Position numbers and translations under genes: made by a program. The notes under the pieces are model-generated. The model saw only the letters and a list, made by a program, of their open reading frames with translations. It was not told the DNA's origin and did no database searches. Positions 13,078-63,700 of a stretch of DNA of 64,000 nt are shown piece after piece. Source of the DNA: Selaginella moellendorffii (lineage: Eukaryota > Plantae > Lycopodiophyta). Every line of letters starts with the position of its first letter. The stretch's first letter is position 1. Location: the NCBI RefSeq assembly GCF_000143415.4, contig NW_003314268.1, forward strand, positions 139,117 through 203,116. The letters run 5' to 3'.

Positions 13078-15361
13078 TCACCGGATGAAGCGTTTGAGGT
13101 GAAAGTGGTTGTGAGCATGTGGGAGCTCACATCCATCAGCATCAACTAGCACGTATGCTCCACCCCCGATGTGTCATTGGACAAAGTAGGGGCCGGTCTA
13201 GCGAGGGAAGAACTTTGAAGGTGGCATGAACTCTTTGAGTAGAACAAGATTGCCATCCTCGAATGGTTCGGCAGACCGCCAGTGATCAATGACGGACTTG
13301 ATCTTTTGCTTGCCTTGAAGGAGATGTTCAGTCATGGATTGTTGCTGTTCTTCCAAGGTGAGAACCTTCAAGTCACATGCATGAAGCTTGTCCTCATCAC
13401 TAAGCTGCATCGCTGTTGCGTATCGAAGTGAATGTGAGAGCGATGGCACCTAGATCTCCACTAGAAGCACAGGCTCTATCCCATAGACAAGGGAGAATGG
13501 GGTCACGGAGATGGCTGTCTTGAAGGACGTCCGAAAGGCCCACAATGCCATAACCAAGTGCTCGTGCCAATGCTTTGGGTGATCCTTAATAAGCTTTGAG
13601 ATGACTCTTCAATATCCTATTATTGGACTCGGCCTGGCCATTGCACTCAGGATAATAGTTGCTACTCTTCACATGCTTGACCTATAGCCATTGGAGAAGA
13701 TGCTACATGTGAAAAGTTGGCTGGAACTCTTGGATGGTCACAATCCAAGATAAAGTACAAGGACTGTGAATCGGTCTTTGTAAAAGAAAGGTTAGCAAAT
13801 TAAAATAGACATGGAAATAGATATAGGCTCCAGCGAGAAAGTGACGAAATTGCTCCAAGGTGTAAATAACAGCCACTGCTTCTTTTTCCGCATCCACATA
13901 CTTCTTCTCAGTCTCCTTGAACGAATGTGAGGCATAGTATGTTGCATGTGGGGGCTTGCCCAGCTATGAACATTGGCAAAGGCATACTCCAAAAGCCTCT
14001 ATACCTGTTGTGATGTAAATGTCACAAGGAAGTTGTCATTTTGGTGGTTGGAGTACCGGGGCCATGCGAAGTGACTACTTTAGTGATTCAAAGGCTTGTT
14101 GTTGGGATTTACCCCAGAAAAATGGAATTTTGTGTTGTAGCAGAGCTATCAGGGGCCGTGAACGTGTAGCATAGTTATGGAGGAAACGGCGAAAGAAACC
14201 TGTTTGCCTGAGGAAGCTGCGAAATTGCTTCACGTTGGTTGGTGGGTTCTGATCTAGAATCTCTTGAGCCTTGACTAACTAGGGCTTGATCCCATCCTGT
14301 GAGACATCAAAGCCCAGTAGCTGGCCTTCAGTCACCCTGAATTTACACTTTGCCGGGTTCAATGAAAACTTGTGTTGTCGGTAGCGAGTGAAGATCTACT
14401 CCAAGTGCACAAGGTGGTTCTCAAAGGAGTTAGAGGTCATGCACAGATCATCCATATACACCCTTAAGGCACCTCCAATCAAGTCATGAAAGGCGTGGGT
14501 CATAAAGCGCTGAAAAGTAGCTCCGACATTACAAAAGCCAAACGGGAGGACGTTGAAAGCGAAGACACCCCAAAGTATCCGAAAGGCCATAAGATCTCGA
14601 TGATTGGGATGAATGAAGATCTGGTTGTACCCTGAAAAGCCATTTATAAAAGAGTAGTAACGGTGTCCAGCCATCTCATCCACAATTGCATCGATAAATG
14701 GAGTCGAAAAGTGATCTTTCGCAATTGCCTTGTTCAAGTCTCAAAAGTCAATGCAGAGGCAAAGTTTTCCATTTGCCTTGCGTGCAGGGATGAGATTGGC
14801 CACCCACTCTGAGCTCCCCAAAGGGTAAATAAAGCCGTCTGCTAGAAGTCGCTCAATCTCCAACTTCATCTCTGAGTGAGCTGTCGGGCTAAAAAACTGC
14901 ATCTTTTGACAAACTAGTTTGGCTGACTTTGAAAGCATAATACTATGCATGATTGTGTCCATGGGAACTCCTAGAAGCTGGCTGTAGTCCCAAGCAAACA
15001 CGTCCTTGAAACAGTGGAGGAGATCCAAGAGCTTTGCTGCGTTTGTTGAAGCAAGTGATGTGGCAATAAAGACCAGGTCCTTGTCATCACCTAGGAAAAC
15101 AGCATGAACTCTGGAGTCTAGAGAAACTTTAGGCTCAGGGGGCTCATCTATCTTAGATTCCTCCCTGACCTTGGAAACCAAAGAGCAGGGAGTGCCTTTT
15201 GCCTCTCACATCATGGTGATTGCTTATTGTGATAACCTGTTTACCCAAAAGTTTTCTTCATGAGGGACACTTTGAAAAGTCACCTGAGAGAACTCATCCT
15301 TTAGGTTGACTGCCCGCTGCCATAGCTCTTTCAAGTTCTCTTTGCGGACTTGATATTCTGT
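13078..15361 (-). mobile_element. Tat-like Gypsy element C, 3' half: aRH C-terminus, RT, RNase H, integrase (pseudogenised)
   Basis: RT motif RVYMDDLC (ORF 14396-14737); LCLCIDF (14741-15181); RNase H AEKEAVAVI; integrase GQAES and GPYFV; aRH tail EYQVRKENLKELW...VTFQSVPHEENFWVNRLS at 15220-15361. Confidence 0.88.
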
Positions 15362-15850: not shown

Positions 15851-18489
15851 CATATTTCGTTGCGAAAAACTTCTCCTCGAGGCAGTAGAAAGGAGAGATG
15901 CCATGTATCTGCCTTGAGATGGCTCGGTAAGTTTCCCAGACTTTTCCTCCAGACATTTGTACCAATCTTTTCTCACAACTCGTAGTGGCTGACGGATGCG
16001 AGGAGATGAAGCTTGTCGAGGCTGTGAGTTTTCAAAGAAGAAAGGAAACATTTGGAGCAATCCAGTAAAGGGTCTGAAGGTAATGCACGTCCAGTCTTCG
16101 CTTCTTGCCTGTGTGAACTAAGCCTTTCGGTATTGCAGTGCAAGTGAACTGATAATCACACGAGATCGCTGTGTATCTGCAAAAACAAGAACTTGGTAAG
16201 CTTTTCCGTTTGAGGACATTTTTTGAATTCTTAAGAGGTAAAAATTTGTAGGAGCATCCAATCGTGAATCAAGTCAAGGCTTCCATCTGAATTCATGGGC
16301 TTGGAGGTGGAAAAGGAGGCCGGTGGAGTTTCTTACGAAGGCTTGGTGAAAGATGAGGCCACCTGGGACACAGGAAGAGTTTGTTCTGTAGCTTCCTCAA
16401 CTCGACTTGGTAAGCCTTTCTCAACAAGCTCACTCGGCATAATGACTGCAGGAAACCAGCTTGCAGAATTTCCCTTTTACCGTCGTGTAAGACTCCAGTC
16501 GCTTTTTGCGTTGATTTTGACTCATCGATCCACTTGTATCTCACCCACACAACAGCGTACCTGTGGAACAGAATATTTCAGGTAAGATCTTCTGTTTTGA
16601 TTCACAAGTTCATACATTTCACTAATCTTCTGTAGCATCCAGTGATACAGCATTTCTAGCGCATCCATTGATCAGCCGAGACATAGATTGATCCAATTGC
16701 AAACACAGGAACAGGATGAAGCTACCGGAGGACTTCAGACAGGGCAAGCAAATTGAGGGACGGAGTTAGTGTTCTTATGATTTTCAGAAACCGGTTTCAA
16801 AATTTGAATTTCCTCGCCCAGTGTGTTTAAAATCCGACCATGATTATGCTAGAAAACTAGCAAAATCTCTGTTCGGTCTTTAAATGTTGGGAGCGCACTG
16901 ATTGTGATTAGTGACAGTGTAATTTGAATTCTCGCTGTTTAGATTCAACATTGGTATTGATTGAAATTCAGATTCAAGAATTATGGGAAAGGAAATTACA
17001 TAAGATCTGGGAATGTTTGGAACAGAATCAAACCGTGTTTAGCAATAAACCATTTAGGGATTGTTTTGGGTTGCAGGCAGGTTACAATATAAAAGCCCGC
17101 ACGGTAGACTGTGACCTGAAATCTGATCTTATTCACAATCATCAAAAAGAGCCATTCACAAACATCAAAAGATGGTCTTCCTTACGTGACTGCTATGAAT
17201 CCCAGAGCTTCATGAATGAATAAAAAACCTAATGTGGCCTCAATGAATTCAGAAATTTTTGTGACAGATAAAAAGTATTCCAAAAAGTATACCTGTCTCT
17301 AAGTTAGTTTTCATTTAATGATGTCTTTTGTTATAAGTAACCTGTTTATACTTTTTAGGTGAAACAGAAAAGCCCTTTGTTTTAGAGACATTAAACAGGT
17401 GTTTATAGACAAAACATAAGATAAAAATTACTAGAATACAAATACCACAAAACTAATATTAATTAATTCATGTTAATCAATCAATCAATTTAAATTATAA
17501 CCGTAAACCCATTTGAGATTGTTTATTCGTATATTTGAGACAACAATGGGACCGTACTCATTCTTTGCCATCTACAAACGATTACGCGCCCAGCTACTTG
17601 CACCCTGGAAACTCTGTTTTTGACATTTAACTCCTTTAAACCATGACAGTTAACCAGCTCCAGATTCATGGGGTTAAACACGTTGCCAAAGCACGGTAAG
17701 ATGCACGTTTGGCTCAGCAACAAGATTCTTTGTGGAAGCACCCAAGAGCTGAGGATTGTACCAGGTTGATTACACACTGGCATGGGTGTATATTAGTGGG
17801 ATTAAGCACCTGACGTGAACTTGTTTGTTTTGCTTGGATGGTTTACGTCAATCATCTGTCAATCCCGGCTCTTACACATTCAAACTTGATGGGCCTTGTG
17901 TGTTTAAGCCAATCATGGCCAAGTTCATGTTGGACGTCTTGCCCAGCGAATCAAGCCTCCCAACTTAAAAAGGAACTTGTGATTTCTTGTCAAGTGTTTA
18001 TTTCTCCGCTGGTTTGCTGGATTTGAAGATCAGTGCTGGTCATTTTGAAAGCTGCACTGGAGTAATGCAAGATATTCGTATCTAAATACCTAAAGATCCC
18101 AAGCTCTCACCACAGATCTAGATGATAAGCAGCGCTGGCCTGGATATACGTGCCACCTACCCGTCCATCCACACCAAACTCACAAACACGTCTCAAAAAA
18201 TAGTCAGTACTTTCGTTGTCAAGTTATGTTTAGCTGTAAAATATCTAGAGAATCGAATATAGACGTACCCGTACCATAGTCATCTCTTGGTTTGGGACCA
18301 GTGTACCATCGGGCATGTCGCGACTCGAGTCTGTGACATATGGTGACATATATCAGATATGCGAGCCTTTGGCTGTGAGCGTATATCAATATATGTGGCG
18401 CACAGCCTTCGCTTGGGCCCAGTGTCACTACAGCCAAACTAACGACTATAAAACCCACTTTGTATTCGTTTCTCTGCAGATCCAAGAAA

Positions 18490-21051
18490 ATGTTTCGCCT
18501 TGTTCTCATCACTCTTCTTCTGCTCTTCCTAGTCGCAAGAAGTGCCGAGCAGCAGGATGGTCTGGTTCGAACCATCAGCAGTGGCGGGGACAAAGTGACG
18601 GTGGACTTGAAGCCCTTCTCAATCCGCAGTCCCAACTTTGGCGTGCTAGTGCAGAATGACACTGGCAGCTTTCTCTCATACGACAACATCCCGCCTTCTC
18701 GTACGTACCTGGGTTCAGTAAGAGACCACCCCGGTGCCATGGCCACGGCCTTGCTCAACGTCAACGGAACTCTGCTTTGTCGAATCAGCTTCGAGAACGG
18801 GGTGGAGTGGAGCAGCACCGGAGGCGAGGCCTCGGTGAGGGGAACCACGGGTTGGAACTCGAATCCCCGGTGGCCAACCAGCCTCGTTCCTGCTTCCAAA
18901 TCCGACGCTGTACTCTTCGTAGCGGAAGTCGGAGTGGATGCTACTTACTTGTACTACCTTTCAACAGGTTCTAGCGTCGAGAACACAGTGAACATGGCAG
19001 AGTTCTCCATCCTGTCTGCGAATATGCCCTTCCTCCGAGATGCTTCCATTCTTCACACGATTGGGAAAGTGGTGATCCGTGCAAGTCAGTCCCAAGATCC
19101 ATATGGAAACCCCAAGACCGGAGTCCTGCTCGACAGGGTGGAGAAACAATGGAGAGGTGCCATTGCTTCCGTGGTAGGCAACACTCACAAGCTCTGCTTG
19201 GTTGCCCATCCTCGGGCTAACGGAGGCTTGGCATGGGTAGCAACGGCGGCTAAGCCGGTGGGATACTCGGCCATCAGTGCTACTGCAAACGGAGATTTCA
19301 CGGTCATCTGGCGGCACGAGGCTGGTCACAACTGGGGATCTAGCCACTACGAAGGTGGTGGACGGCCCGAGGGACCGACTATCATGTCCGACAACCAGCT
19401 CTCCCGTTTCTCGTCTTCCGAGCTTGCCAAGATCCTGCGCTACAAGTCTGGTGTTCCTCGCCTTGCAAGCAACATTACGGTTGCCCGTCCACCCCGTGCG
19501 AATATGGATGCGATCGACATCCCGCAGAATTGCACCTGTTGCACTTGCTTCAAGAGCCTGGACGTTCTGGCCAACGATCTGGATGCCGACGTCAAATCAC
19601 TCACGATCGCCTCGGTCCAGTCTCCTTCGGCTTTGGGCAGTGCCACTAGCATCTCAAACTCTAGCTGGAACCAGATTACTTACACGCCGTCTTTGGCAGC
19701 AGGATTGTTTCTCGACCATCTCAAGTACACTATCCAGAATTCCCTCTTGAGAAGCTCCACAGGATACGTAACCCTCCGTCCCGCTGCTCTCCTGGGCTGG
19801 TGGAAGATGGATGAGGCGAGCGGCTCGAAAGTGCAAGATTCGTCTGGGCATGCAGCGAATGGGGTACTCAAAGGAGGATCCTGGAACAACGGCAATGGGC
19901 TTTCCTTTGGAGGTGCAGGGACGGTGTCACTCGGCGCAAGTCCCTCCATCAGAGGCAAGACATCCTTCTCCATCGCCTTGTGGATATATGTTACCAGTAC
20001 TTCAGAACAAGTCATCATCCAGCAAAGGAGTCCACCGAGCAGCATCACAAGTGGCTCCGACGGAGGATATCAGCTCAGTCTGTTTGAAGGCAAGCCCCGG
20101 TTCTGGGTGTTTTCGGACTCCGGAGATCAATTCAGATTCTCTGCCTCAGCTGCCATCAACGACGGTGGATGGCACCACATCGTAGCCGTTCGTGATCAGG
20201 CCGAGGGCCAGATCTACATTGATGGCAAGCTATCGGCCTCTGCAAGCGGCGACATCAAGTATTTGGATGTAACTATCCCCGTGTTCATGGGTGCTGATGC
20301 GCGCGACAACACCTCATTCCTCACGGGTTCCTTGATGGGGGCAAAGATCTACAGCCGAGCTCTAGAACAGGAAGAGATCGGGTATCTCAGCACCTGGCCA
20401 GAAGCTCTCGTGGCATGGTGGAAGCTGGATGACAAGAGTGGAGTCTCTGCAAAGGATTCGTCCTGGAACGGAGCAACCGGGAGCATCGAGGGATCAACGA
20501 CGTGGAATCCCGACGGCGGACTTACCTTCGACGGCGCTGGCAAGGTGGTGCTAGGAACAAAACCCTCTCTGTCTGGCAAGACATCCTTCTCCATCCATGC
20601 GTGGGTGAAGGTGCCACCAAGTGCTGGTAAAATTTCACGAGCGATCATCATCCAGCAAAGGAGCCCGCAAAGCAGCACAACAAACGGTTTCAATGGCGAA
20701 TACTTGCTCTACTTGGTCCATGGCAAGCCTCACTTCTTTGTGTATGGGAATTCTGCGACTCAGTTCGACTTCTCTGCGTCTTCTGCCATCAACGACGGCG
20801 AGTGGCACCACATTGTGGCCGTGCGTGATAACGGTGTGGGGCGGATCTACATTGATGGCGAGCTGTCAGCTTCTAAAAGTGGCACTGTGGTGAGGAGCTT
20901 GGATGCATCTATCCCTGTGTTTCTGGGTTGGGATTCTCGCTCGGGCAATTCCTTCTTCACAGGTTCCTTGAAAGGTGTCAAGATTTATAACCAGGCTGTG
21001 GCACCCAACTTTGAGGCCGAGCGTAACACCATGCTCCTGGCATCAGCATAA
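18490..21051 (+). CDS. Secreted M12/reprolysin-like zinc metallopeptidase with Big_9/cadherin-like domain and two Laminin-G (ConA-like) domains; intronless, 853 aa from ATG 18490
   Basis: Signal peptide MFRLVLITLLLLFLVARSA; metzincin motif HEAGHNWGSSH (19315-19347) with Met-turn TIMS; LDVLANDLDAD..LTIASV Big_9 motif; two LamG repeats (WWKMDE/WWKLDD, DGGWHHIVAVRD/DGEWHHIVAVRD, IYIDG). Confidence 0.9.
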   Translation: MFRLVLITLLLLFLVARSAEQQDGLVRTISSGGDKVTVDLKPFSIRSPNFGVLVQNDTGSFLSYDNIPPSRTYLGSVRDHPGAMATALLNVNGTLLCRISFENGVEWSSTGGEASVRGTTGWNSNPRWPTSLVPASKSDAVLFVAEVGVDATYLYYLSTGSSVENTVNMAEFSILSANMPFLRDASILHTIGKVVIRASQSQDPYGNPKTGVLLDRVEKQWRGAIASVVGNTHKLCLVAHPRANGGLAWVATAAKPVGYSAISATANGDFTVIWRHEAGHNWGSSHYEGGGRPEGPTIMSDNQLSRFSSSELAKILRYKSGVPRLASNITVARPPRANMDAIDIPQNCTCCTCFKSLDVLANDLDADVKSLTIASVQSPSALGSATSISNSSWNQITYTPSLAAGLFLDHLKYTIQNSLLRSSTGYVTLRPAALLGWWKMDEASGSKVQDSSGHAANGVLKGGSWNNGNGLSFGGAGTVSLGASPSIRGKTSFSIALWIYVTSTSEQVIIQQRSPPSSITSGSDGGYQLSLFEGKPRFWVFSDSGDQFRFSASAAINDGGWHHIVAVRDQAEGQIYIDGKLSASASGDIKYLDVTIPVFMGADARDNTSFLTGSLMGAKIYSRALEQEEIGYLSTWPEALVAWWKLDDKSGVSAKDSSWNGATGSIEGSTTWNPDGGLTFDGAGKVVLGTKPSLSGKTSFSIHAWVKVPPSAGKISRAIIIQQRSPQSSTTNGFNGEYLLYLVHGKPHFFVYGNSATQFDFSASSAINDGEWHHIVAVRDNGVGRIYIDGELSASKSGTVVRSLDASIPVFLGWDSRSGNSFFTGSLKGVKIYNQAVAPNFEAERNTMLLASA

Positions 21052-22206
21052 ATACCATATATATGCTATGTATTGTGATATATTTTGAATATATATTAAA
21101 TGTATTGAATATTAAATATATCTAATAAATACTATATTATTTATATTTTATCATTCCTTCCAAAGGAACAGGAATTCACCCGCAATTTTTGATGCTTTTC
21201 ACCTCAGCGAAACACCATGTAATTTGCTTGTTCAAATGTATGAGAGCAAAGATTCGACAGAATCCGAGGTCCAAGCAATGCAGGTTTAGAGATTACTTCC
21301 CAAACGGCAAACGACTACTCTAGGTAAGTCAAATTTGAATTTTGACAAAAAAATTCACGAGCTGAATGACCCACTGGAGTCTCAGTAAGCGGATGTGATC
21401 GGTTCAAGCAGGAAGAATATCCCTCAAACAACGTGCAATTATTTTAAAAAATTATATAAAATGTCTTCTACTTTAGGGTTCTTCAGTGAAAATGCGCTCA
21501 AGATCTGGCTGGAAGGCTTCTGCAATGAATTGGTACGTATCCAATAATCGTTGGATTCGTCCGGTTCTTTTCTGATCATTTTTCTTCGTTTTTGGTACAG
21601 TTCAAGGTGGATTGAGTGAGAGCTCATAAATGCGAGTTCCTCTTCTGTTCAATCATACAAGGTTGTGATCAGGATGAACTGGACACCGACTAGATGCGCA
21701 AGTCTAAGGGTTCTAGTCGCCTACTGCTTCGTCCACATACCACGAATCAGGTGTGAACTAGATTTAGTTTGTAAATTGTGGATGAAGGTTTCGGAAATAC
21801 TTTGCTACAGTAGTAAATCAGGTTTCTCAAGTTGGTCACACTGGACTAATTGGAGGAAGTGTTCCTCTGTTTGATGAGGTAATTGGATATCTTTTAATTT
21901 TCCAAGAATGTTGCAATTTGATATATAATCAAGCAGATTATACTGAATCTCGATGCCATGAACTCAACCCTTTGCTTTTGATGAGGTAAACCTTCTTCGT
22001 TCTTTAGTTTTTTGTTATTAGTTGATCTTCAGTCACTCATAATAGATCAGTATTGTCATCCATTGCCTACTGTAAATGAACTGTTCTATCTCCTCATCGA
22101 GATCACAAAGGTGCAGACGAAAGCTCACGCAATTCATTACAGCAGAAGCCCTAAATCCGTAAATAATCAGCACTTGGTTTTTTTCTGATAAGCTTTCCCT
22201 TACTAG

Positions 22207-22282
22207 GTGCAATTGATGAAGAACATGAAGAAGCTCTTGGATCCTAAAGGCATTCTCAACCCTTACAACGTTCTTGCGTAAT
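22207..22282 (+). pseudogene. Isolated last exon of an FAD-linked oxidase (D-2-hydroxyglutarate dehydrogenase-like)
   Basis: After an AG acceptor: VQLMKNMKKLLDPKGILNPYNVLA*, the FAD-oxidase C-terminal DPxGILNP motif. The rest of the gene is not evident. Confidence 0.65.
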
Positions 22283-22917
22283 AGTCGGGAACTTTCAGAC
22301 AAATCTTCGACAAACTCTGAAAATACATTTTTCTAAAAATCGATTTAGAAACAAGCTCAAATTGTCCTGAATGTTACTTAAAAAACATTTAAGTTTTTGG
22401 TCGCACCAAAATGGCGGCAGGATTTTTCCGGCCGCACCAGCTGTGCAACAGGAAAAATCCTGCCACACCTTCTAGCATCGACTTGGTGAGCGCATTCAGT
22501 GCCTTTTTGGCCGCACTCTTCTCCACCAGAATGAGAGGAGACATTCTTGATTGTTGATCCATAGCTGAAGACTGCTCACTAATTCCTCAACTCACCTGGA
22601 TGATCGATCGACGCCTCCTCTAAGCGCGAATACAAATGCACAGGCTTCTAAAATTAGGGCCTACTTAATAATGATTTATGTCAGAAAATCGCTTGCCCTA
22701 ATACCCTGTATTTTCTATACTTGGAATAATCTCCAAATAATTATGTCACCAGGTAGGAATAAACCTATCCCCAGGTTCGAATCCTGGCAACCCCCTAATT
22801 TTTTGTTTTAGTTTAGTTTAGCTGACTTGCATACTAAAATACGCTTTAAAATCGTATAGTTTATCAATATTAATTTAGGGCAAGAGGCATGAAATTTTGA
22901 CTTTGGTTTTAAGTTAA

Positions 22918-23002
22918 GGTACTTGGCTGCTATGACGGCGTCCCTGTGAGTCTTAGAGCTGATAAAAGACTCACAAGGACGCCGTCATAGCAGCCAAGTA
23001 CC
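22918..23002. repeat. Near-perfect inverted repeat (37-bp arms, 11-nt loop)
   Basis: GGTACTTGGCTGCTATGACGGCGTCCCTGTGAGTCTT and its reverse complement at 22966-23002, one mismatch. Confidence 0.95.
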
Positions 23003-23760
23003 CATTCCAGTTCATCTGGCTGGTAAGGTATACTAAGCAGCAGAGCTTCAGCATCTCTCAAAGAACTCGCCCGCCCTAACAAATCGATCATGCAGCAATA
23101 ATGTAGGCTTCAGCCCGTGATCAAACATCAGACTCACAAAGCAAGACCTACCAGCCTCCAGCTTCCCGATCCGGCCAAAGACAACAGAAAACATGTCTCA
23201 TCCGGCAACTTGCTAAAGGTTTCCATGGCGTGCCTGGGATACCCGTTCTGGGCATACCCAGCCAGCATTGTGTTCCAAGAAGCAATGCCTTTCCGGGTCA
23301 TCTGCAGCTGAAATGCCGATGCTTGAGTCATATCTCCGACTTGGACATAAGTGGCCAGCATTGCCGTCCACGACACAGAGCTCCACTCGGGCATCATTTC
23401 AAAGACGCGCTCCGATCCTTTGAGATCTCTACAGAAGCAGAACACACGAAATACGTCCCGCTGAGGCATCACACCGAAAATCTGACTAGCCTCGTCTGCG
23501 TGACCGTTCCGGGCATACAACATTAGCATCGAGTTCCACGACACCAGATCCCGCTGCGGGGATTCCTCGAACACCGCCATCGCCTCCTCCACGCAATTCA
23601 TCATCCTGGTGTTCTACGCGGAAAGCATGACATTCCACGAAACCAGATCCCTCACCGGCAATTCGAAACGAAACATCTGTCTGTGGCTCTGTCCAGATGC
23701 CCATTCCGGGCATATCCAGAAAGCATCCAGGCGGCCAGGTTCCAGTTTGCCGCGAACTCT
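23003..23760 (-). pseudogene. PLS-class pentatricopeptide repeat protein pseudogene/fragment
   Basis: PQRDLVSWNSMLMLYARNGHADEA, SWTAMLATY, SWNTMLAGYAQNG and TYCCMIDLLGRA motifs; frameshifts and deletions. Confidence 0.85.
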
Positions 23761-23769
23761 CTACTCGGC

Positions 23770-24681
23770 CGTCGTTGTCAGGCGGAGCAGTTAAACTGGG
23801 AACGTAGGCAACGTTCCATACGGACTCTTCTCGGTTCACGTTCCAACGAGGGACGTGCAAATGCCAAGCACGAGTGTCCAGATTGAAGGCCACCGGTCGG
23901 TCCAACAAGTGGAGAAAGAGCATGTTGTTAGCCCGTTTGCAAGGAAGCAGGTGATGGGGCTCCACGTTCCTGCACAAGCCTCTCACATCGATGCTGGACA
24001 CAATCGTCCACTCCAGCTGCTGCTCATCAGCTTCTTCATCAGCCGCCTCCACGATGACCATCCACTTTGGAGCGAAGCAAGGCCTTGCGAAGGGCACACC
24101 ACCAGCGTGTTTCCCCACAACCACAATGCCTGCTGCCATCAGCTTGGACCGGTGGTCCAGCCTGCCATACACCGATCCCGCATCATCCGAACCTCCTTCC
24201 GGCGGCAGTGGGGGCAACGACTTGAAATGCCAAAACGCCCATGCGTCCCTTGCCCGGCTGTAGCCACTGATTGTGTAGCCCAAACTCACTGAGTCGCAAC
24301 AGGAGGCGTATTGCGCGTATTGCACGTCCACCTGAAAAAACACCCGGTAATTCGTGGTGGTTCTGGTTCGTGGGGCACCTGCCATCCTCATCGGACACCC
24401 AAAGAGACACCGACACATAGCCCAACACGACTAAGTCGCAGGAGCCGCAGGACAGCAAAAACTTCTCCTGCAACCGTCTTGGGCAACCGCTTCAAGGCGC
24501 CAGTCATGGGGTTCATGACTGAAAACCAACTTGCATCATTGGACGTGACAATTCCTGCTGACATATCGAATAAAGACAATAATGCGTCAGGACAAGGGAG
24601 AGGCATGATATCTTTGTTGTGTTCACTCTTTTTAAGCAAGAAGGGTTGGGGGTAAGCTGCCGAAGCAAGAGAAGGATTCAT
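23770..24681 (-). pseudogene. F-box-associated/kelch-like protein fragment
   Basis: FSVMNPMTGALKRLP, WHFKSLPPLP, VAFNLDTRAW and VAYVPSL resemble plant F-box C-terminal regions; the frame changes between ORFs 24388-24681 and 23486-24418. Confidence 0.55.
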
Positions 24682-26180
24682 AGCTGAGGTATGCCTGTCT
24701 TGATGCGTTTACACATATCATCATCTAACTGCTGGACTATGCCCAGACTGAAGTAGAAGAAGACCAACGAAAAAGAAGGAACGAAGAAGGGCCAACGTGA
24801 GGCTGAAAATATGACTGTGGAAGCATACACAGCATTAGTGCTGGCTTTCATTAAGCATCATGTCCTTCCAGGCCAAATAACAAAATTACCTCATCTCTTT
24901 GATCGCGAGCAGTCCTGCTTTGCAACAGGAGCTTGTGTCTTTCCAGCCACCATCTTTTGCAGCCCACTCCCTGCTCTTGCATGTCCCACACCATGGCCTG
25001 TAACTTCTTTGCCATGATCAGCCAAAGTGACTAGTCAATGTTGCAGATGAGTTTCTACCTGAACGTGCATGGAGATGACCATTGCATTGAAGATTCAGTC
25101 CTGAATCCTCTAAGTCATCCCTGGCAGCCAGTGTCCACTCGCATGCTCTTCCACGGCCATCAGTTGATCACGGGTGGTCATCTGAACTTGTTCCAATCCA
25201 TCTTTTTCTTCATTCACAATCACTACTGAGTCATCTGAAGCTCGTTTGCACTGATGTCTTTGCACTTCCCTGGCTCTCTACCTTTGGCAGTCTGGTATAA
25301 GGAGTTAAGAATACAACTCCATAAAGCAAATAACTTTACCGTCCATGTTCACGTTTGTCGTTGTAGTTCACACCCCATGACTTTTTTGAAGTCGACTGGA
25401 TCGCACATCGCTCCCGGTCGTCAACTTTCAAGGAAGCTGGACGTTGCCAATCGCTCGCGAGATTGGGATCGACAACGTGATCGCTGAAGCACAGCCCAGC
25501 GTCAAAGCCGATAGAGCTGGTCTGTCTCAACATCCTCCTCTTCAACAATGGGACAGTGAACAGGGTTGTCGTGCGGTGCTGCTCTCTGGACGCAGAAACT
25601 CCCAAGGCATCACCTGACCAGCAGAGATTTCATTTGGCCGCCTTTGATCTACCTTCGGATTTTTCCTGCATCTGAGGTGTCCACATTAGAAAGAAGAGAA
25701 AGATCAGACAAGCAAAACCATGAAGTTTAGGGTATACAGCCTGGCAGGCGCAGGTAATTTCATGACTTCATACACATCCATACTCCCCTCCGCCACCTTT
25801 GGAATTCCTGCCTGAACCGTTGCTTTCACGTAGAATTGGAAAGCAGTCAAAACGCTCCATAAGGATGTTGTTGTAACCCTCGTACTTCTTCCAGTTTGTT
25901 TGGCTTGGGTTTATGTAGGACTTCGTACTTGTCAACCGAAATCCAATGTCGGGTACCGTACATAGATATTTAAGTTCTGATTTGAGAAGAGGGAGGGGAG
26001 GGTTCAGAAACTGAAACCCAAGCGCATCAATTTCCGTTCCACATCTTACTCACAGTCCTCCAACAAATGCAGGACACGACCTCGATCTCGTACTCTATTC
26101 TCGTCGGACGACGCCCACACATTCCACAGTTGATCTCGATGCTTTGTCTGGACAATTCCTACAAATGCCATCAAAGAGTA

Positions 26181-29100
26181 AATAAGTTGGTGTATGATGA
26201 GTTGCACATCTCCAACGAAAGTGACTTGCCTAAACTTGAGATCTGTGGCCAACTTCATGGCACTAATAGCCACAAGTACTCTGTTTCATTAGCTGATGTT
26301 GCTGGCAAAGTAATAGAGAGGTCAGCTACTTTGTTCTCCGCAGAATCAATCATCTAAACTCCAATGCCGGCAACTTGGTTTTTGGGGTAGAAAGCACCGT
26401 CAAAATAAGCTGTAATCATAGGAGTGTCCTCTTCTTCAAATAAAGGACACCACATCTGGCAAGACCGTCTTTGGCAAGTCTAGCAAGAACATTGCTGTTG
26501 GATCTGGAGTCTTTGTCTGTTGTTCTCTTTGCTTCTAATGCTCTAAGCGCTCAATTTCCAATGCAAAGACTATGGCCAAGTATTCTGCAAGTGGAGGAAG
26601 TTCCTCCACTGAAGTCAAGTCCAAGTTTGGTGCTAAAGTTTCAGTGTAATACACTTGGATTTGTACCGGGAGCTCCATGGTAGGAAATTTTGAACTCAAA
26701 GAGCTATAACTCGCATGTAGCACGTTCAATTGACTTGATTCTTTCTACCAGTTGTGTGTCTGGATGTCATCTTCTGTCTCCAAGGAACAGCATGGCAAAA
26801 TACGCTTAGAGTCATTTTAGTAGGAAGATGCTGGCTGTGTGACACCTCAGACAATTGCTGAGGAGGATTGAGTTCGGCTGTGTCTTGTGAAAGATGGACT
26901 TGTTCTGGAGTGATTGTGTCCTCAAGCTCCATAAGAGAGAGTTGGTCCCATACAAGAAACAAATTGAGAAGCCCTTCCTTTGTCAAGAAACACTCCGAAA
27001 AGCTGGATATAGGAGTCTGTACCCTATAAGCCCCACCATCGAATAAAGAGGGCATGGCTAAAGGCTTGGCCTTACTCTCAAATAAAGAGAGTGAGGCTAT
27101 TTGACTCACCTCTAGCAACATCGATTGCATTGCATGAGAAAGCATTCGTCATATAGATGGTCGACTCCACCGCCAACTCAAGAAAAACCTCTGTGAGCTC
27201 AAGAGGAAAGTGTGGTGTGAAGGCCATCTTAGTCTGAGCCTGCTGGGCTTGCTGAGAAAAAACTCTGCTGTGGTTGTTGAGAAAGGTGGCGCTATGGGTT
27301 CCATCGCTAATTTCCATCTTGCCTTATGTGCTGTTAATGATGCAATGGGCTGTGACTTGCCATGAGCGGCCAAGGATGATAGAGTCCTTCAAAAAGGACA
27401 TTCCAAAATGTTGGTAGTCAACCATGAGGAAATTTACCTCAGAACTAACACCCTGCACTAAGACTTTGACACCACAGCAAATGCCTGTTGGAGGAATAGT
27501 GTGGTTGGCGAAGGTCTTGAGCACGATGGAGGAGCTCTCAGTGATCTGTAGCTGTGATGAGAGGGCAGCTTCAAGAGAGATAATGTTGCTTCTAGAACCA
27601 GAGTCAACCAAAGCATCCATCCTACAAGAGGAAGTACCAATCTGCACCAGGACGAAGAATGGACCAGGATCCCCACCATATTTTGTCATGTCGACAATGT
27701 GCACCTCTTGAGGAGTCCTCTTGAGAGTGCTCTTTGGTGTTCCTGACCTTGCAAACTCCTCTAAATGCTGGCCAAATCTTGGGATAAGACTCAACATGTT
27801 TTGGAGCGAAAAGGTGACAGGAGTGTCAACCAGCTATTGAAGAACCATCTCTAGAATAGGAATAGATGTTGATGAGATCTCAGGGGGAGAAGAGAGTAGT
27901 GACTTGAAGGGGAGCTTACAAGCCACCCTCTATGTCATTGGATTTGGTGCTGACAAAGATTCACTCTCAATCGACATTGGGGGATCGATGCCGGGCTGAG
28001 CGGCTGCCTTCTTCTTCACTTGGGCTTGAGTGGCTGCGGTTTGCTGCTGTTGCCTATAGAGATCCTCGGCTACCAAAATCGTGTTGACTGATGAGGCTGG
28101 TGCCTTGCCTTTGCGTGACGAAGGGGCTGCCTCAATTGCTTGTCGCTCCAACTGCTCCTGATATGTCTCTGGACTCTGAGATGATGTGGAATTATCAGTG
28201 AAGGGATGTTGTTGGACACGTTGAGAAGATGGAAGCTGAAGCTTTGGGTGAAGCTTGAAGTAGTGCTGCGTGTTGTGTGTGTTTGTCTCGCAGTGAGTGC
28301 ACCAACGGGACTTAAATCTATATTCCTGAGCTATAGCAGCCTCTTTCCTGGACTCCACTAGCTCTTGGAGCAATTTGTCATGGTGTGATTGCTGCTGAAG
28401 AATGATCTCCTTCGGCTGCCGCATCTCGTTGGCAAAGTTTTCAATAGCCAGAGGTGTATACTCAATAGCGACAGGCTTTGGTGTGGACAGGCGAATAGCT
28501 GCACAAGGTGACTCTGACGGGGTGATAGCTTGGTCAAAATCAACTTTAGCGATCCCCAGGTTGACAAGGAGCTCTCTTTCCAGCTTTGTGGCTAACGAAA
28601 ATGCCTCGCGACAAGACTTGAATGTCTTCTTAAGAAGTTTCTGCTACAAGTTCCCCCGCAGAACTGCTGTGAATGCCGTGATCCCCTGTTGCTCATCTTG
28701 GACCACTCTACGATCCTAACACTGCTTCCAGTATGCTCAAAATTGAGTGATATAGTTAGGAACAGACTTGTGAGCACCCTTTCGGAACGAAAAGAGGTCA
28801 ACAATTGTGGGTTTTTCTTCAACGAAACGTTCTTTGAAAGAAGCAAGTAGTGTCTGGAAGTCTGTCCGGTCCTCTAGGAGGAGAGAATCTGCCCAAGTTC
28901 CTACTTTGCCTTCGAGAGACTGCAAAAAGTCATGGCACATACAATCATCATCGACGATCATGTTTGTCGTGCAATAGTAATCAAAGCGACTGATATGCAA
29001 TGTTGGAGAGATTGTTCCAACACCTGAGAAGGTCGGCAAATCACTCCTCTTTTGCAAAAGATGGAGTTGAGGTCAAACTAAAGGTGGCTACACCATAGTT

Positions 29101-35274: not shown

Positions 35275-36462
35275 TTAACTAGGAGAAGATAATTTGCACA
35301 CGTCTTCATAGGGAAGACCACCAACAATGCTACCTCGGTGAGGTCCATTGCTAATCTCCACCGTGACCGAGAACTTGTCCTCCTCACAAGACACGAGCTT
35401 GGCATCGCAGCCAGCGTGTGATCCATTCACCACTCTCACGCTGCGACCAATCTGTGGGATCACAGTCTCCAGCTCCGACTGATGCACCCTGATCACCTCG
35501 CCATGACCCTCAAGCATCTCAATCTCCCCGGTAACCTTCTCACTCGCCACGCTCTTCACAACCCCTTTCTTCTTGTAGTAAGCTCCGCTCTTGAGCTTCT
35601 TGGCCATCACCTTGACCACCAATCTCTCGCTCAGCCAGCAAAACGGAGGAGCTTTTTGCGACGAGGACGAGCCAATCGATCCTCCAAAAGTTGCTGCCGC
35701 TGGTGGCCGAGGAAGCGGTGGAAGATTGCTGCTTTTCTTCTTGGAGAAACTAAACGCCACCTTCACATCACCAGTCGGACCTGCTCTCTCTTCCTCGCCA
35801 CCATCTTTTCCATCTTTTTCTTGCTCGACACTGTCTTGCTTCTCTTCGTCTTCCTCGTCTTCCAAGCCTTGGGACTTCTCCTTCTTCTCCCCTTTGGCTC
35901 CCACTTCCATCAGGCAACGCTCCCTTTGCAGCTGAATCTCCCTCTCGTGCCGCTCGATATCCGCAGCCTCGCCGCTAGCTCGTTTCCTCTTGAGACCCTC
36001 CTTGAACTGCGTCTCTGGATGATCCGGATCCTCGAGAAATCGCAAGTGGAGACCCTTCTCGGTCTCCTCGAGCTTGCATTTCCCAGTCTGGCCTAGATGC
36101 TCTACGAATTCCGAGAGAGTAGCCCACCTTGTGCCGTTCATCCGGACGTGATTCCTCTCCCGCGTGATCTGGTTGTACACCACATTCGGCGGCACACTCG
36201 TCGATCGGTAGCAGCGCCGCATGTACTCCATGAATTTGTCCTCAAACCTCTGCGAGTACTCCTCGATCAGCTGGTCGCCCTTCTCTGCGAAGAGCTCCAT
36301 GTTGCGGATGTGACCCTCGCTCTCGCAGTGGCACTTGAATCCATTCTGGTCGCGGCATTGCTTGCGGCACATCTGGCAGTAGAGCCACTGCTTGCCTAAG
36401 CCCTTGGCCTTGAGGCGCTTGGCGATCGCCTTGGGCGTGAGATATGGCGCATCGTGCCCCAT
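35275..36462 (-). CDS. KIN17: DNA/RNA-binding protein KIN17 homolog, intronless
   Basis: TPKAIAKRLKAKGL, WLYCQMCRKQCRDQNGFKCHCESEGH zinc finger, MNGTRWATLSEF winged helix, C-terminal KOW/SH3-like region ending YEDVCKL. Confidence 0.95.
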   Translation of the reverse strand: MGHDAPYLTPKAIAKRLKAKGLGKQWLYCQMCRKQCRDQNGFKCHCESEGHIRNMELFAEKGDQLIEEYSQRFEDKFMEYMRRCYRSTSVPPNVVYNQITRERNHVRMNGTRWATLSEFVEHLGQTGKCKLEETEKGLHLRFLEDPDHPETQFKEGLKRKRASGEAADIERHEREIQLQRERCLMEVGAKGEKKEKSQGLEDEEDEEKQDSVEQEKDGKDGGEEERAGPTGDVKVAFSFSKKKSSNLPPLPRPPAAATFGGSIGSSSSQKAPPFCWLSERLVVKVMAKKLKSGAYYKKKGVVKSVASEKVTGEIEMLEGHGEVIRVHQSELETVIPQIGRSVRVVNGSHAGCDAKLVSCEEDKFSVTVEISNGPHRGSIVGGLPYEDVCKLSSPS

Positions 36463-60700: not shown

Positions 60701-63700
60701 TCATGAAAGGAGCTTTTTCAAATAAGCGATGGCGGCGTTAGCTGCCGAGTCTTTGGCCCGCTTCATGTCTCGCTGGGGCTCTCCATAAAATGTCACGGGT
60801 CCATCGATTGGAAGACTGATTGTCACAGCCAAAGCAAAGCTACAAGATGGAAAAACAAAACAACAATCAGCAGGATTAGGAGTTTCATTCTTTTCTTTTC
60901 TTACTGTTTCATGTGAGGAGGACCACTCTCCTCGCAAATAATGTACTCGGGATCCGACCACCGTCTCTTTTGGCAGAGAATTTGAAGCTCTGCTCGTGGA
61001 GCTCCAACAACAAAAGAATCACTGCCACCACCTTCTGGAAAGAAAACACAAATCGTAAGGATAGAAACATGAAATAGCTTTTACCGTGTCTAGGAGGAAC
61101 AGTAGACGAAGCTGTAGCACTGCAAAGCTTCTCGAGGAGATCATCGTCGAGACCAAACTCTTCCGCAAGTGATGGTGCTAGAACATCTGACTCGTGTTCA
61201 GTGTCGACAAGTTCTAAATCGGAAGGCAAGTCATGGTCTGGAGCAAGACTTTCCTGCCGAGATAGATCTGATTCTGCAGAAGAACTCGAGCTCGACATTG
61301 GTGGTACGAAGGATGCAAGCTCCGATTCCATGCACTGTGTAACGACGGGGACACTGAAGTTCAAACCGTTGTTTATGATGACCTTTGAGGCCTCTATGTG
61401 TGTCTCGGCCCGAATAGCATGAAGGAGTTCGTGCCGTGGGTGTTGAAATCCCAAAGCCTGAATATAAACGAAAAACTGTAACGTTTTCGGAGCATAACTT
61501 GTTATTACCTTCAGTTTTCCCAAGGCATCGGCAGAAGACTGCTTCTTGAGAAGCTTTTTGTTTGCTCCTCCGGAGCCTTGTCCTGTGACTAAGCCTCCGT
61601 CTGCCAATGTCACCGAGCAAGTTCCAACGTTGTAGCTTGGAGCTGAAATTTCTTTCAGCTGGCATAGCTCCTGAAGCTCTCGGACTGGGTGAAGTGCCAA
61701 GCTCTCGGGACTGGCAATCGGGCGCAGAAGGGGCTCCAATACGCTCCACACTAGTTCCAGATTACCACCCGTATCAAATAACAAAGCTCCCGCGAGAGAT
61801 TCCACTAAATCACTGAGACACTGCAAAAGACAAAGAGACAAGCGTCAAGAGGAGGACAAACTTTTAAAGCTCAGAGAGTGACCTTTGGCGGTTGCTCAAG
61901 CTGCCAATCCTCGAAACAGTGCACATTTTTGTTCAGAAGATACTCGTCAATCTCTTTAAGCTTGTGACGCAGATACTTGTGAAAGTTGTGGCGCACAGCA
62001 ACGAAAGCGAACCAAACATTGTTCACTGTAGCAACCTTGAGATCACTGAGAAGTCCCGGTTGCAAGTTGGGATAGCTCGCATAAAGATGAAGAACAATGA
62101 GGTAATCGAGGACAGCATCGCCTAAATACTCCAGCCGCTGACAACTAACCAGTGTTAGTCCAGCTCCAAAAGTTACTTGTTTACCTGATACGATCGAACG
62201 CTGGAAGAAGCATGAGTGAACGCTTCAACAAGGAAGCATTTGTTTCGAAAGGTATAGCCGATTATCTTTTCCAGATTGCAGATATCGTCAACTTCAGAAG
62301 CTTGGCATGAGAACACAGGTACTAAACACCTGTCAACCAGCTTAAATCCTGCCCAGGTCATGAAGTGATAGGCAGCATCAGCGGAGTTGTCAGTAATGTA
62401 TGCACCGATGATGGCCTCCATTACATCTGCAACCGATTTTCTTCGCAGACAACGATGCCCTTTGTCACAGAACTTCCGTCCTAAAAGCTTTTCGTGACTG
62501 GCCAAAGAAGAGCAAGGGACCGGTGCAATCCAATCCTTTGGCTCAAACTGCCCGTCTCTGATGTACGTCTGTAAGTTCTGTTGAAGAGACTAGAAACATG
62601 TTATTGCATGCTTACCACCAATCCTCTTTGTACACCAAGCCTGTGCAAATTGCTGTTAGAGATCTGCTCTTCACGCCTTTGACTAAGAAAGCCTTCTTGT
62701 TCTTCCGGATATTCAGACACCAAGTGCAAGCTCAGTGCAAATTTGAGGAATGAATCGCCTAAAAACTCGAGTCTCTCGAGAGAAAAGCCTTCGTTACAGC
62801 TTGCAGAAGTCAGTGCCATCAACATCTGCAGGGAAAAAAGAAAAATGAAAACAATAAAAATATGAACGCGAACAGCATTTTACCATGGTTGTAGTCATGT
62901 GAATGCCCACGAGTTTCGTCAGCTGTGCAGCAGAACTTAGACATTCTAGCCGGTAGATAACGGAAGGAAGCACCATTACGGACGCCACAACGGAGTAGTC
63001 AAGTTCTGGTTCTAAGAGAATGCAAAGCTCGGGCGGCAGCTCAATAGTCGATTTCCTATGCGACGTGCCAGGCATGTCTGTTGAACGTGGCAGTAAATAG
63101 TTTTGCACATCGCCAAGCATCTTCACTTTCAGAAGGGGTTGGGCTGGATATTGCAGTTTCATATTATGCCTGTAAGTCGCTCCTCACAATCAGAAACGAA
63201 GAAGGAACTCACAAATCTTACCTTTTCAAGAAGTAGTCGGAATAAGTAATATATTTGGGATTGGAAAACGGGCTTTGCGCGGTTGTGTCCTTAAGAACAC
63301 CCAAAAGAGAATAAAAAACTGGTTCATTGGTATGCTTTGTAAGAATCAGTCCTCCTTTGATATCTGTAGCTCGAAGCGAATAGTTTGCAAAATGTAAAAC
63401 ACTTTTGTCATCGTTGTCTGAGACAATTGATGGAGGTGTGAGAGACTGAACGCATTTCCAGTCTACATCTATCTTGCCAGGAAGCAGTGGCAGAAGTAAG
63501 TATTGCTGGAGATGGATTGGAGGTAGTCGTCGTTGCCATAGGATAGGAAAAACTATTTCGTAGAACCGATTTACGGCAGCAATCTTGAAAATCGGAGCAT
63601 AAGTCAAAACATAATACACAAAAGCGACAAAACTTACCTTGTCACTGTCTAAGATGATATTTTGCACGGAGCCTAGCTGAACCACAACATTTCTTCCACG

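Follow-up and report, generated by a model that had tools for sequence, protein, structure and literature searches.

How an intact gene for a secreted protease of bacterial type came to lie in the genome of a lycophyte, and whether it works there, are the questions raised by the 64,000-nucleotide stretch of Selaginella moellendorffii DNA analyzed here (contig NW_003314268.1, positions 139,117 to 203,116; hereafter the window, to which all coordinates refer unless another locus is named). The window is part of the 3.9-Mb scaffold GL377572.1, and on its forward strand an uninterrupted open reading frame (ORF) of 853 codons extends from an ATG at 18490 to a stop codon at 21049 to 21051. This intronless coding sequence (CDS; 18490 to 21051, +) equals the public model SELMODRAFT_407389 minus a 21-residue N-terminal extension added by JGI, and the two proteins are 100% identical across 853 amino acids (aa); the longest mechanically called ORF begins 10 codons 5′ of the ATG, at a TTG. 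An earlier note on this DNA had proposed a bacterial-type secreted metzincin, horizontally acquired and then domesticated, and this proposal was borne out by the gene's integration, base composition, transcription, selection, phylogeny, and distribution among plants. We put the probability that the gene is of bacterial origin and has been domesticated as a functional nuclear gene of S. moellendorffii at roughly 0.8. We found no paper on the gene or its copies in the literature; supplementary tables of surveys of horizontal gene transfer were outside that search, and a prior listing there is possible.

The translation reads as a secreted, modular protein, and the signal peptide, the zinc-binding motif HEAGHNWGSSH, the Met-turn, the Big_9 module, and the two LamG domains that had been noticed in the uninterrupted 853-codon frame were all recovered from the ORF, the Pfam matches, and the motif positions. 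The predicted signal peptide (aa 1 to 21; 18490 to 18552, +) combines, as read from the sequence, a hydrophobic core with a cleavage-like A-x-S site, where cleavage would fall between VARS and AEQ. Its hydrophobic N-terminus, MFRLVLITLLLLFLVARSA, has a basic, hydrophobic, small-residue layout and is identical in all five copies of the gene in the assembly, and the bacterial homologues carry a signal peptide at the same position. An N-terminal β-rich domain resembling an ADAM prodomain, with a linker, probably follows (aa 22 to about 141; 18553 to 18912, +). In the AlphaFold2 model, the strands at residues 25 to 117 have a predicted local distance difference test score (pLDDT) above 90. Foldseek aligned about 400 columns with the ADAM17 zymogen and profragilysin, and aa 44 to 99 showed a faint profile match to the ADAM17 prodomain.

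The next domain, at aa ~142 to 330 (18913 to 19479, +), was assigned as an adamalysin-type (M12B-like) metzincin catalytic domain on the basis of Pfam, a profile search of the PDB, Foldseek, and the AFDB. The zinc-binding motif occupies aa 276 to 286 (H276, E277, H280, and H286; 19315 to 19347, +), and the Met-turn TIMS, with M299, occupies aa 297 to 300 (19378 to 19389, +) and aligns with the CIMS of acutolysin A; the whole segment from the zinc motif through the Met-turn, encoded at 19315 to 19389, reads HEAGHNWGSSHYEGGGRPEGPTIMS. H276, E277, and H280 were invariant among 71 homologues and H286 was kept in at least 90% of them, while M299 was invariant in 13 homologues. The PDB profile search matched acutolysin A, ADAMs, and CpaA, reaching acutolysin A at an E value of 1e-3 with GLAYV, HExxHNxGxxH, and IMS aligned. 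A model of aa 1 to 345, built from the 71-sequence alignment, had a pLDDT of 92 and a predicted template-modeling (TM) score of 0.91. Its best PDB match in Foldseek was the ADAM17 zymogen (TM by query ~0.6 over ~400 columns; probability, 1.00), followed by profragilysin-3 and by snake-venom adamalysins (for the latter, TM by target 0.72 to 0.76; root mean square deviation, 3.0 to 3.6 Å), and the matching AFDB clusters over residues 22 to 325 were annotated as "Peptidase M12B domain-containing" proteins. The predicted fold thus identifies the protein as an M12B-like metzincin with an ADAM-like prodomain. Its catalytic residues are intact. That it is an active secreted protease is somewhat more likely than not, though less certain than its origin.

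The C-terminal part is predicted to consist of binding modules. A Big_9, or bacterial cadherin-like immunoglobulin-type, domain was matched at aa 346 to 432 (19525 to 19785, +) by Pfam Big_9 (E = 5e-8; 34 bits, above the cut-off), Cadherin_4, and Cadherin_5. It is preceded by a Cys-rich insert, NCTCCTC (aa 347 to 353, with cysteines at 348, 350, 351, and 353), which is specific to Selaginella, being found in none of 12 aligned bacterial sequences. LamG domain 1 (aa 433 to 636; 19786 to 20397, +; Laminin_G_3) and LamG domain 2 (aa 637 to 853; 20398 to 21048, +; Laminin_G_3, Laminin_G_1, and Laminin_G_2) account for the two stretches matched by Laminin_G_3, with 169 bits against a cut-off of 27.6 and an E value of 8.6e-50. 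They are 55% identical to each other, and the DNA encoding them contains an internal repeat (20012 to 20250 versus 20645 to 20883) with 72% identity over a 239-nt core. The full-length model (pLDDT 77) confirmed two jelly-roll LamG domains, which matched laminin LG4-5 and neurexin LNS at an E value of 1e-15 in Foldseek. As a clue to the protease, the full-length fold search was set aside, since generic LamG jelly-roll matches to laminin, neurexin, and the receptor-binding domains of clostridial toxins dominated it; nor did we read any toxin kinship into the last of these, with which only the jelly-roll fold is shared. The protein also contains six N-x-S/T sequons.

We searched for relatives with a word-based method over 5.8 billion protein clusters and exhaustively with HMMER over 1.84 billion representatives. 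Both searches showed a score cliff, from 1878 bits for Selaginella to 750 bits or less, and the named top matches were all Verrucomicrobial (Luteolibacter, Haloferula, Akkermansiaceae, and Verrucomicrobiae). This bacterial family is both large and varied: 1094 representatives matched at E ≤ 1e-30. A scan of GTDB with one genome per species found 38 loci, 33 of them in Verrucomicrobiota, the others being in Abditibacteriota, a probably mis-binned "Bifidobacterium" metagenome-assembled genome, and distant Gemmatimonadota, Actinomycetota, and Proteobacteria. Over aa 22 to 345, identity to the fourteen best matches was 50 to 56%, and similarity to Verrucomicrobial proteins reached E values of 1e-100, against about 1e-3 (profile) for eukaryotic ADAMs. 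Besides S. moellendorffii and one fern, no eukaryote-labeled relative was found among these clusters and representatives, in which most matches are unnamed and the sequences covered have at least 0.55 of the length of the query.

In maximum likelihood (ML) trees of the first 440 residues (LG+C20+F+G4), the five Selaginella copies formed one clade (support, 96/99 to 100/100) on a stem of 0.7 to 1.6 substitutions per site, and this clade emerged from the backbone of the Verrucomicrobial radiation. The clades enclosing it had SH-aLRT values of 85 and 99 in the midpoint-rooted tree from which the longest rows had been removed. The ML tree, which had been suggested as a check of the transfer, therefore placed the Selaginella clade within a Verrucomicrobiota-dominated family, and these trees allow the donor to be named to the phylum level only (Verrucomicrobiota). 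Lumbricidophila (L040), which had appeared as sister of the Selaginella clade, was discarded in that role: it has a very long branch, the pairing was gone once the long rows had been removed, and this pairing is likely a long-branch artifact.

The closest bacterial proteins are annotated as "LamG-like jellyroll fold domain-containing" or "M12 family metallopeptidase" proteins, with examples in Luteolibacter ambystomatis (KBB96_17450, our P0016), Haloferula sp. BvORR071 (P0008), Luteolibacter sp. LG18 (P0012), and metagenomes (P0002 to P0004); no functional names for them were present in the sources searched. Like the plant protein, they have a signal peptide, a prodomain, and a catalytic core of the form HEAGHNWGS.HYEGGG.PEGPTIMS, followed by Big_9 and LamG, and they share with it 48 to 56% identity over the first 345 to 440 residues and 35 to 55 invariant columns. 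However, they are 1300 to 2000 aa long and carry a different LamG after Big_9, in addition to He_PIG, DUF1349, and further LamG or anchor modules. In P0002 to P0004 (~1490 aa), the order is protease, Big_9, LamG(a), Big_9/He_PIG, LamG(b), LamG(c), and DUF1349. Both Selaginella LamG domains grouped with the bacterial LamG(b) in a tree and were 51 to 53% identical to the second LamG of P0002 to P0004, whereas they were only ~24% identical to LamG(a), the one that follows Big_9 in bacteria, and did not group with it. This grouping and the domain order indicate that the plant gene is a shortened derivative from which LamG(a) has been lost, along with the C-terminal half, and in which a b-type LamG has been duplicated, the two domains being tandem duplicates of one bacterial LamG subtype.

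The gene is integrated in the plant genome, and it is there more than once. Four further gene models are 96.6 to 99.4% identical to SELMODRAFT_407389, giving five copies, 97 to 99.6% identical, on three scaffolds: models 430418 and 448687 are both on GL377695.1, 17 kb apart, and models 445106 and 421556 are both on GL377617.1, 32 kb apart. The assembly, as we presume, may hold both haplotypes, in which case the five models would represent at least three loci. All five copies have plant flanks, including PPR, DnaJ, F-box, CVNH, and retroelement sequences, and one paralogue directly adjoins an 884-aa PPR gene. By blastn against the four other loci (L001 to L004), the gene of the window lies in a segmentally duplicated block of ~9 kb (17117 to 26182, no strand assigned) that includes ~1.4 kb upstream and ~5 kb downstream of it. 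Its left edge varies from 17117 to 17679 across the paralogous loci, and its right edge is at 26182 in L001, L003, and L004, while the match in L002 stops at 24389. These duplications are recent. We dropped the idea that the block is a classical transposable element (TE) and treated it as a segmental duplicate, because no long direct or inverted terminal repeats were present at 17117 or 26182.

The base composition is host-like and fully ameliorated. The GC content and third-position GC content (GC3) of the gene are 0.548 and 0.62, close to those of the neighboring KIN17 (0.553 and 0.673) and leucine-rich repeat (LRR; 0.528 and 0.633) genes, whereas the GC3 of the Verrucomicrobial homologues is 0.77 to 0.90. 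When words were sampled from a 5.7-kb stretch containing the gene, 0.54 to 0.62 of them were present in a separate DNA data set of the same species from 2024, and no more than 45% of this stretch is the gene.

The earlier note had named a lack of expression as a ground against function. We found the gene to be transcribed, with RNA-type contigs covering 18477 to 21105. The evidence consists of assembled contigs from four runs of four studies placed on 16600 to 22400, the library type ("RNA?") being an automatic guess, and contig cover in all four was confined to that interval. In addition, 20 runs labeled RNA or unknown contained 35 to 78% of the gene's words. Word depth rose to 1226 in one run and was 0 across 16600 to 18345 and 21256 to 22225, and this absence from both flanks rules out DNA carry-over. 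One run matched the window exactly over 1.7 kb and the others had at most 4 differences per 2.5 kb, showing that this locus or its allele is transcribed.

Contig 5′ ends were at 18477 (run X1), 18488 (X11), and 18504 (X10, followed by adapter), and 30 nt before the first base with cover, 18477, is a putative core promoter, the TATAAAA box at 18447 to 18453 (+). The box is kept in four of the five copies, the fifth having TGTAAAA. The probable transcription start and a short 5′ untranslated region (UTR) would then occupy 18477 to 18489 (+), a 13-nt leader that includes the CAG of a CTGCAG. This CTGCAG had been taken for the acceptor of a 5′-UTR intron, which the contigs do not support: none of those placed on 16600 to 22400 was reported with a splice joint, and depth was zero from 16600 to 18345, including the first exon predicted by JGI (ATG at 17643); any exon within 1.9 kb upstream would have given depth. 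CTGCAG therefore probably sits at a TATA-driven transcription start and is not an intron acceptor. Of one 107-nt contig, only 83 nt were placed, from 18477, and the other 24 nt were unaccounted for, so that a spliced 5′ leader keeps a modest chance. At the other end, transcripts stop at ~21070 to 21105, 20 to 55 nt past the stop codon, in an AT-rich 3′ UTR (21052 to 21105, +) with ATTAAA and AATAAA-like motifs.

RNA cover and copy comparison together also correct the public models of SELMODRAFT_407389, 448687, 445106, and 421556, whose N- and C-terminal extensions neither supports. The 21-residue N-terminal extension of SELMODRAFT_407389 lacks RNA support because cover starts at 18477, and for the same lack of upstream cover the upstream ORF in models 421556 and 445106 is unsupported. 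Among the JGI proteins, P0068, P0001, P0065, and P0066 carry such unsupported N-terminal exons or extensions (window 17643 to 18479), and P0001 in addition has a C-terminal read-on of ~100 aa. Although the public models differ, the 853-aa ORF is the same at all five loci. As a separate observation, three runs labeled as other organisms (X31, X29, and X30) contained 6 to 28% of the 31-mers of the gene region (window 16900 to 22600); these may be close relatives or mixed samples carrying the gene.

The five copies are under purifying selection. All have the same ATG and the same stop codon and keep the 853-codon frame, and the 2562-bp CDS contains no indel among them, although the flanks have 8 distinct indel positions in just 200 bp. 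Pairwise ratios of nonsynonymous to synonymous substitution rates (dN/dS) were 0.21 to 0.37 in nine of the ten pairs; the pair of the window and L001 had 0.79, on only 7 differences. Across all five copies, 30 variable sites were synonymous and 27 nonsynonymous, where 76% nonsynonymous is expected under neutrality, which corresponds to an overall ω of ~0.29 (binomial p = 3.4e-6). The dN/dS among paralogs, which had been proposed as a check of function, is therefore not near 1. Since dS between the copies is 0.003 to 0.03, they are young, and this ω measures recent constraint; older constraint is shown by the catalytic and structural invariants, all of which survived the long stem branch.

These results bear directly on the other ways in which such a gene could be explained. 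Contamination or a chimeric scaffold, with a bacterial ORF misjoined to plant sequence, would account for the lack of introns, the otherwise bacterial domain architecture, and close homologues that are all bacterial, but its probability is negligible. Five copies lie on three large scaffolds with plant flanks on each, GC3 is like that of the plant neighbors and unlike that of Verrucomicrobia, the nearest bacterium is merely 48 to 56% identical, transcripts with sharp gene-sized boundaries recur in several independent studies, and words of the gene-containing stretch recur in the 2024 DNA data set. It is also very unlikely that the gene is a transcribed but functionless passenger on the duplicating 9-kb segment, its decay yet to come. 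The copies are indeed very young, the block lies amid TE debris and was apparently inserted into a retroelement, and the TATA box is mutated in one copy. However, the stem of 0.7 to 1.6 substitutions per site and the full amelioration imply that the gene has long resided in its host and that its ORF, its signal peptide, and all catalytic residues have survived this time, ω is well below 1, indels avoid the CDS, and word depth in RNA-type runs is high. That an ancient eukaryotic gene was inherited vertically and lost on a massive scale, or that a transfer went from plants to bacteria, is highly improbable. Animals and fungi do commonly have ADAM-type M12B proteases, it is the ADAM17 zymogen that the fold resembles most, and fragilysin is a proposed case of inter-kingdom movement of the ADAM-like fold; yet similarity to eukaryotic ADAMs is marginal next to that to the Verrucomicrobial proteins, the Selaginella clade is nested in, not basal to, a large and diverse bacterial family, and partner domains such as Big_9 and Laminin_G_3 are characteristic of proteins from bacteria.

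Several points weigh against a bacterial gene domesticated as a working protease. The Pfam matches of the protease domain are marginal: Reprolysin_3 scored 22.7 bits against a cut-off of 22.4, while Reprolysin_5 (24.1 versus 27), Reprolysin_2 (17.3 versus 27), and Reprolysin_4 (13.3 versus 22) stayed below theirs. The residue after the third zinc-binding His is Tyr287 (H-Y-E), not the Asp that is typical of adamalysins and ADAMs in this position (HExxHxxGxxHD), for which reason we call the domain M12B-like rather than a canonical adamalysin; the Verrucomicrobial family as a whole has Tyr or Phe there. We saw no Cys-switch in the prodomain. Transcription was judged from contigs rather than reads, with guessed library types and no poly(A) tail seen, and the plant distribution is known from cluster searches, not from direct queries of other lycophyte genomes. 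With the longest rows removed, the sister of the Selaginella clade was a clade of 58 rows, but this pairing was weakly supported, and the trees were rooted by one very distant sequence or by midpoint. The stem itself is long; this and the full amelioration suggest that the transfer is old, that the donor lineage is unsampled, or that both are true. Finally, a fern homologue exists, so that a single transfer specific to lycophytes may be too recent or too simple a history.

The fern protein, the sole further eukaryote-labeled one, surfaced when the word search was restricted to the protease half. It is encoded by L7F22_037765 of Adiantum nelumboides (MCO5583849.1/MCO5583850.1; our P0117), has 745 aa, and comes from a 1.73-Mb contig. 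Its modules are in the Selaginella order, with a prodomain, a protease-like domain, a Big_9-like region, and LamG, but there is a single LamG, which by position is of the bacterial "first" type. Its zinc site is destroyed, reading WRLLAGLMWGATP where the family has WRHEAGHNWGS.H, and no signal peptide was evident in the gene model. It is 46% identical to the Verrucomicrobial P0004 and P0219 and 32 to 39% identical to Selaginella, its own branch measures 2.2 substitutions per site, and a search for its relatives found none in other ferns.

Should the two plant genes be orthologues, a gene transferred once, long ago, into an early vascular-plant ancestor would have come down to lycophytes as well as ferns, with losses in seed plants and most other lineages. 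The shared module order agrees with this, as does the joint ML tree, in which the Selaginella and Adiantum branches met at one node (support, 92/30), and both plants are nearest to the same Verrucomicrobial subgroup (P0002, P0004, L006, and L007) by path or identity. On the other hand, the joined branches are both long (1.4 and 2.2 substitutions per site) and were flagged as such, and in separate trees the two plants attached at different places. A tree holding Adiantum with the P0009/P0007/L033 clade was 6.8 log-likelihood units better than the free tree (p-AU 0.71), neither tree being rejected. The two plant proteins are also less similar to each other than either is to bacteria (46 to 56%), their LamG types differ, the fern having the "first" type by position and Selaginella two of the "second" type, and the cluster searches found no further plant homologue. 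We consider a single ancient transfer unlikely and lean, though only slightly, toward two.

Two transfers would allow a broader, tentative suggestion, which we regard as possible though somewhat doubtful: that the Verrucomicrobial M12B-Big_9-LamG family was captured independently by two free-sporing vascular plants, yielding a catalytically competent, highly expressed, and amplifying protease in Selaginella and a pseudo-protease that keeps only the binding modules in A. nelumboides. If such recurrent capture is true, the protein may bring an immediately useful extracellular function, for example, the recognition and cutting of microbial or wall glycoproteins, and would represent an ADAM-like protease system on the side of the plant that is missing from seed plants. 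The fern relative, with its dead catalytic site, could serve as a natural contrast for deciding which part of the protein was selected.

Returning to the Selaginella gene and to its bacterial origin and domestication, a likely course of events can be outlined. Its ancestor would have been a secreted multidomain metalloprotease of a Verrucomicrobiota-like bacterium. After integration, it would have gained plant signals, namely, the TATA box about 30 nt before the start, the 13-nt leader, and the AT-rich 3′ end, while its base composition would have drifted fully to that of the host. The bacterial N-terminal half, from the signal peptide through the ADAM-like prodomain and the adamalysin-type zinc catalytic domain to Big_9, was apparently retained, together with two copies of one LamG type, and recent segmental duplications of ~9 kb would then have spread the gene to at least three loci. 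In the plant, the signal peptide would direct the protein into the endoplasmic reticulum and secretory pathway and on to the apoplast, and the prodomain may hold the zymogen latent until it is removed. H276, H280, and H286 would bind zinc, with E277 as the general base of the endopeptidase. The ligand of Big_9 and the LamG domains may be a glycan or a glycoprotein of the plant wall or of microbes, and its binding would aim the protease. Verrucomicrobiota are common in soil, in water, and in association with plants, and occupy glycan-rich habitats; by analogy to these habitats only, O-glycosylated wall proteins or microbial surface proteins are candidate targets, with defense and wall remodeling equally conceivable. 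An apoplastic, defense, or cell-wall role, as had also been suggested, may be surmised from the signal peptide and the domain types.

Several known metzincins share features with the protein. The ADAMs and adamalysins (MEROPS M12B; ADAM17 zymogen, acutolysin A, BaP1, and adamalysin II) share its predicted catalytic fold (TM by target ~0.75 over ~200 residues), HExxHxxGxxH, and a (C/T)IMS Met-turn, and the β-rich prodomain of ADAM17 is superposable. However, the identity is only 13 to 18%, Big_9 and LamG stand in place of the disintegrin, Cys-rich, and EGF modules, and the residue after the third His and the missing Cys-switch motif set the plant protein apart. Profragilysin-3, or Bacteroides fragilis toxin (BFT), is a bacterial zymogen that likewise combines an ADAM-like prodomain with an M12B-type catalytic domain and was the second-best class of structural match, but with a TM of ~0.4 and 12 to 14% identity, and it lacks Big_9 and LamG; both the direction of movement and the partner domains differ. 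We do not suggest that the plant protein is a toxin. Acinetobacter CpaA is similar in being a secreted metzincin flanked by noncatalytic domains, and its zinc site gave weak matches (NCBIfam metallo_CpaA, E = 7e-5; PDB 6o38, E = 0.013), although the score was 21 bits against a family cut-off of 750 and the ancillary domains differ.

Plant matrixins (M10A; At1- to At5-MMP type) are also plant metzincins with HExxHxxGxxH and a Met-turn and are secreted or glycosylphosphatidylinositol anchored, but they have a different prodomain, a PRCGxPD switch, and a different evolutionary origin. No Peptidase_M10 match was found in the Selaginella protein with Pfam at E ≤ 0.1, and the PRCGxPD cysteine switch does not occur in its translation. 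To our knowledge, no ADAM or adamalysin-type protease is otherwise known in plants. Of interest here are this ADAM-like protease class in a plant, the quality of the evidence, and a possible parallel capture in a fern. Bacterium-to-Selaginella transfer itself has a precedent in a GH25 muramidase, a secreted hydrolase of bacteria whose gene entered the Selaginella genome, was retained there, and has since been passed on vertically, PCR having shown it in several Selaginella species (Metcalf et al. 2014, PMC4241558). That enzyme belongs to an unrelated family and came from a different donor; within Selaginella, the metalloprotease has so far been seen in S. moellendorffii. Well-supported transfers of secreted enzymes from bacteria to plants are few, and they inform how early-diverging land plants built their extracellular toolkits. 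Through the present gene, a lycophyte would possess an M12B-like protease that is aimed by lectin-like domains, and the gene offers a clean, testable case in that it is expressed, under purifying selection, and amplifying, with an identifiable donor phylum (Verrucomicrobiota).

The surroundings of the gene had been described as ~35 kb of decayed TE DNA in which it was the only long intact ORF. The CDS is in fact the sole ORF of at least 200 aa on its strand from position 1 to ~35 kb, but the flanks also hold a PPR gene fragment, and intact plant genes follow from 35 kb on, so that the description is fair but incomplete. The PPR fragment lies inside the duplicated block (23137 to 23604, −; Pfam PPR, E = 2e-24). 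Minus-strand retroelement remnants bracket the block: gag and aspartic-protease remnants on its right flank (26729 to 29057, −), with Pfam Retrotrans_gag at 28740 to 29057 and weak RVP_2 and Asp_protease_2 matches at 27327 to 27797, and a reverse-transcriptase remnant on its left (14399 to 14737, −; RVT_1, E = 5e-12). From the gag and protease at 29.0 to 27.3 kb on one side and the reverse transcriptase at 14.7 to 14.4 kb on the other, the ~9-kb block appears to have been inserted into a retroelement. The block also contains a 310-aa ORF without a Pfam match (23486 to 24418, −); kinship with a second 310-aa ORF at 60909 to 61841 was rejected, the two being unrelated on comparison.

Small CVNH (cyanovirin-N homology) lectin genes lie 6 to 9 kb from the paralogous protease copies on GL377695.1 and GL377617.1 (L001:3878-4306, L002:19370-19798, and L003:22115-22543). 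CVNH is another patchily distributed family, and with such a distribution two unusual genes of secreted-lectin type would share one neighborhood. The intact plant genes from 35 kb on include those for KIN17 and an LRR protein, beside which the window further along encodes a PAZ-containing ORF. KIN17 is encoded at 35275 to 36462 (−) by a 395-aa ORF free of interruptions, in which the zinc finger, the winged helix, and both SH3/KOW-like domains of the full KIN17 set are present, and this gene looks intronless or single-exon.

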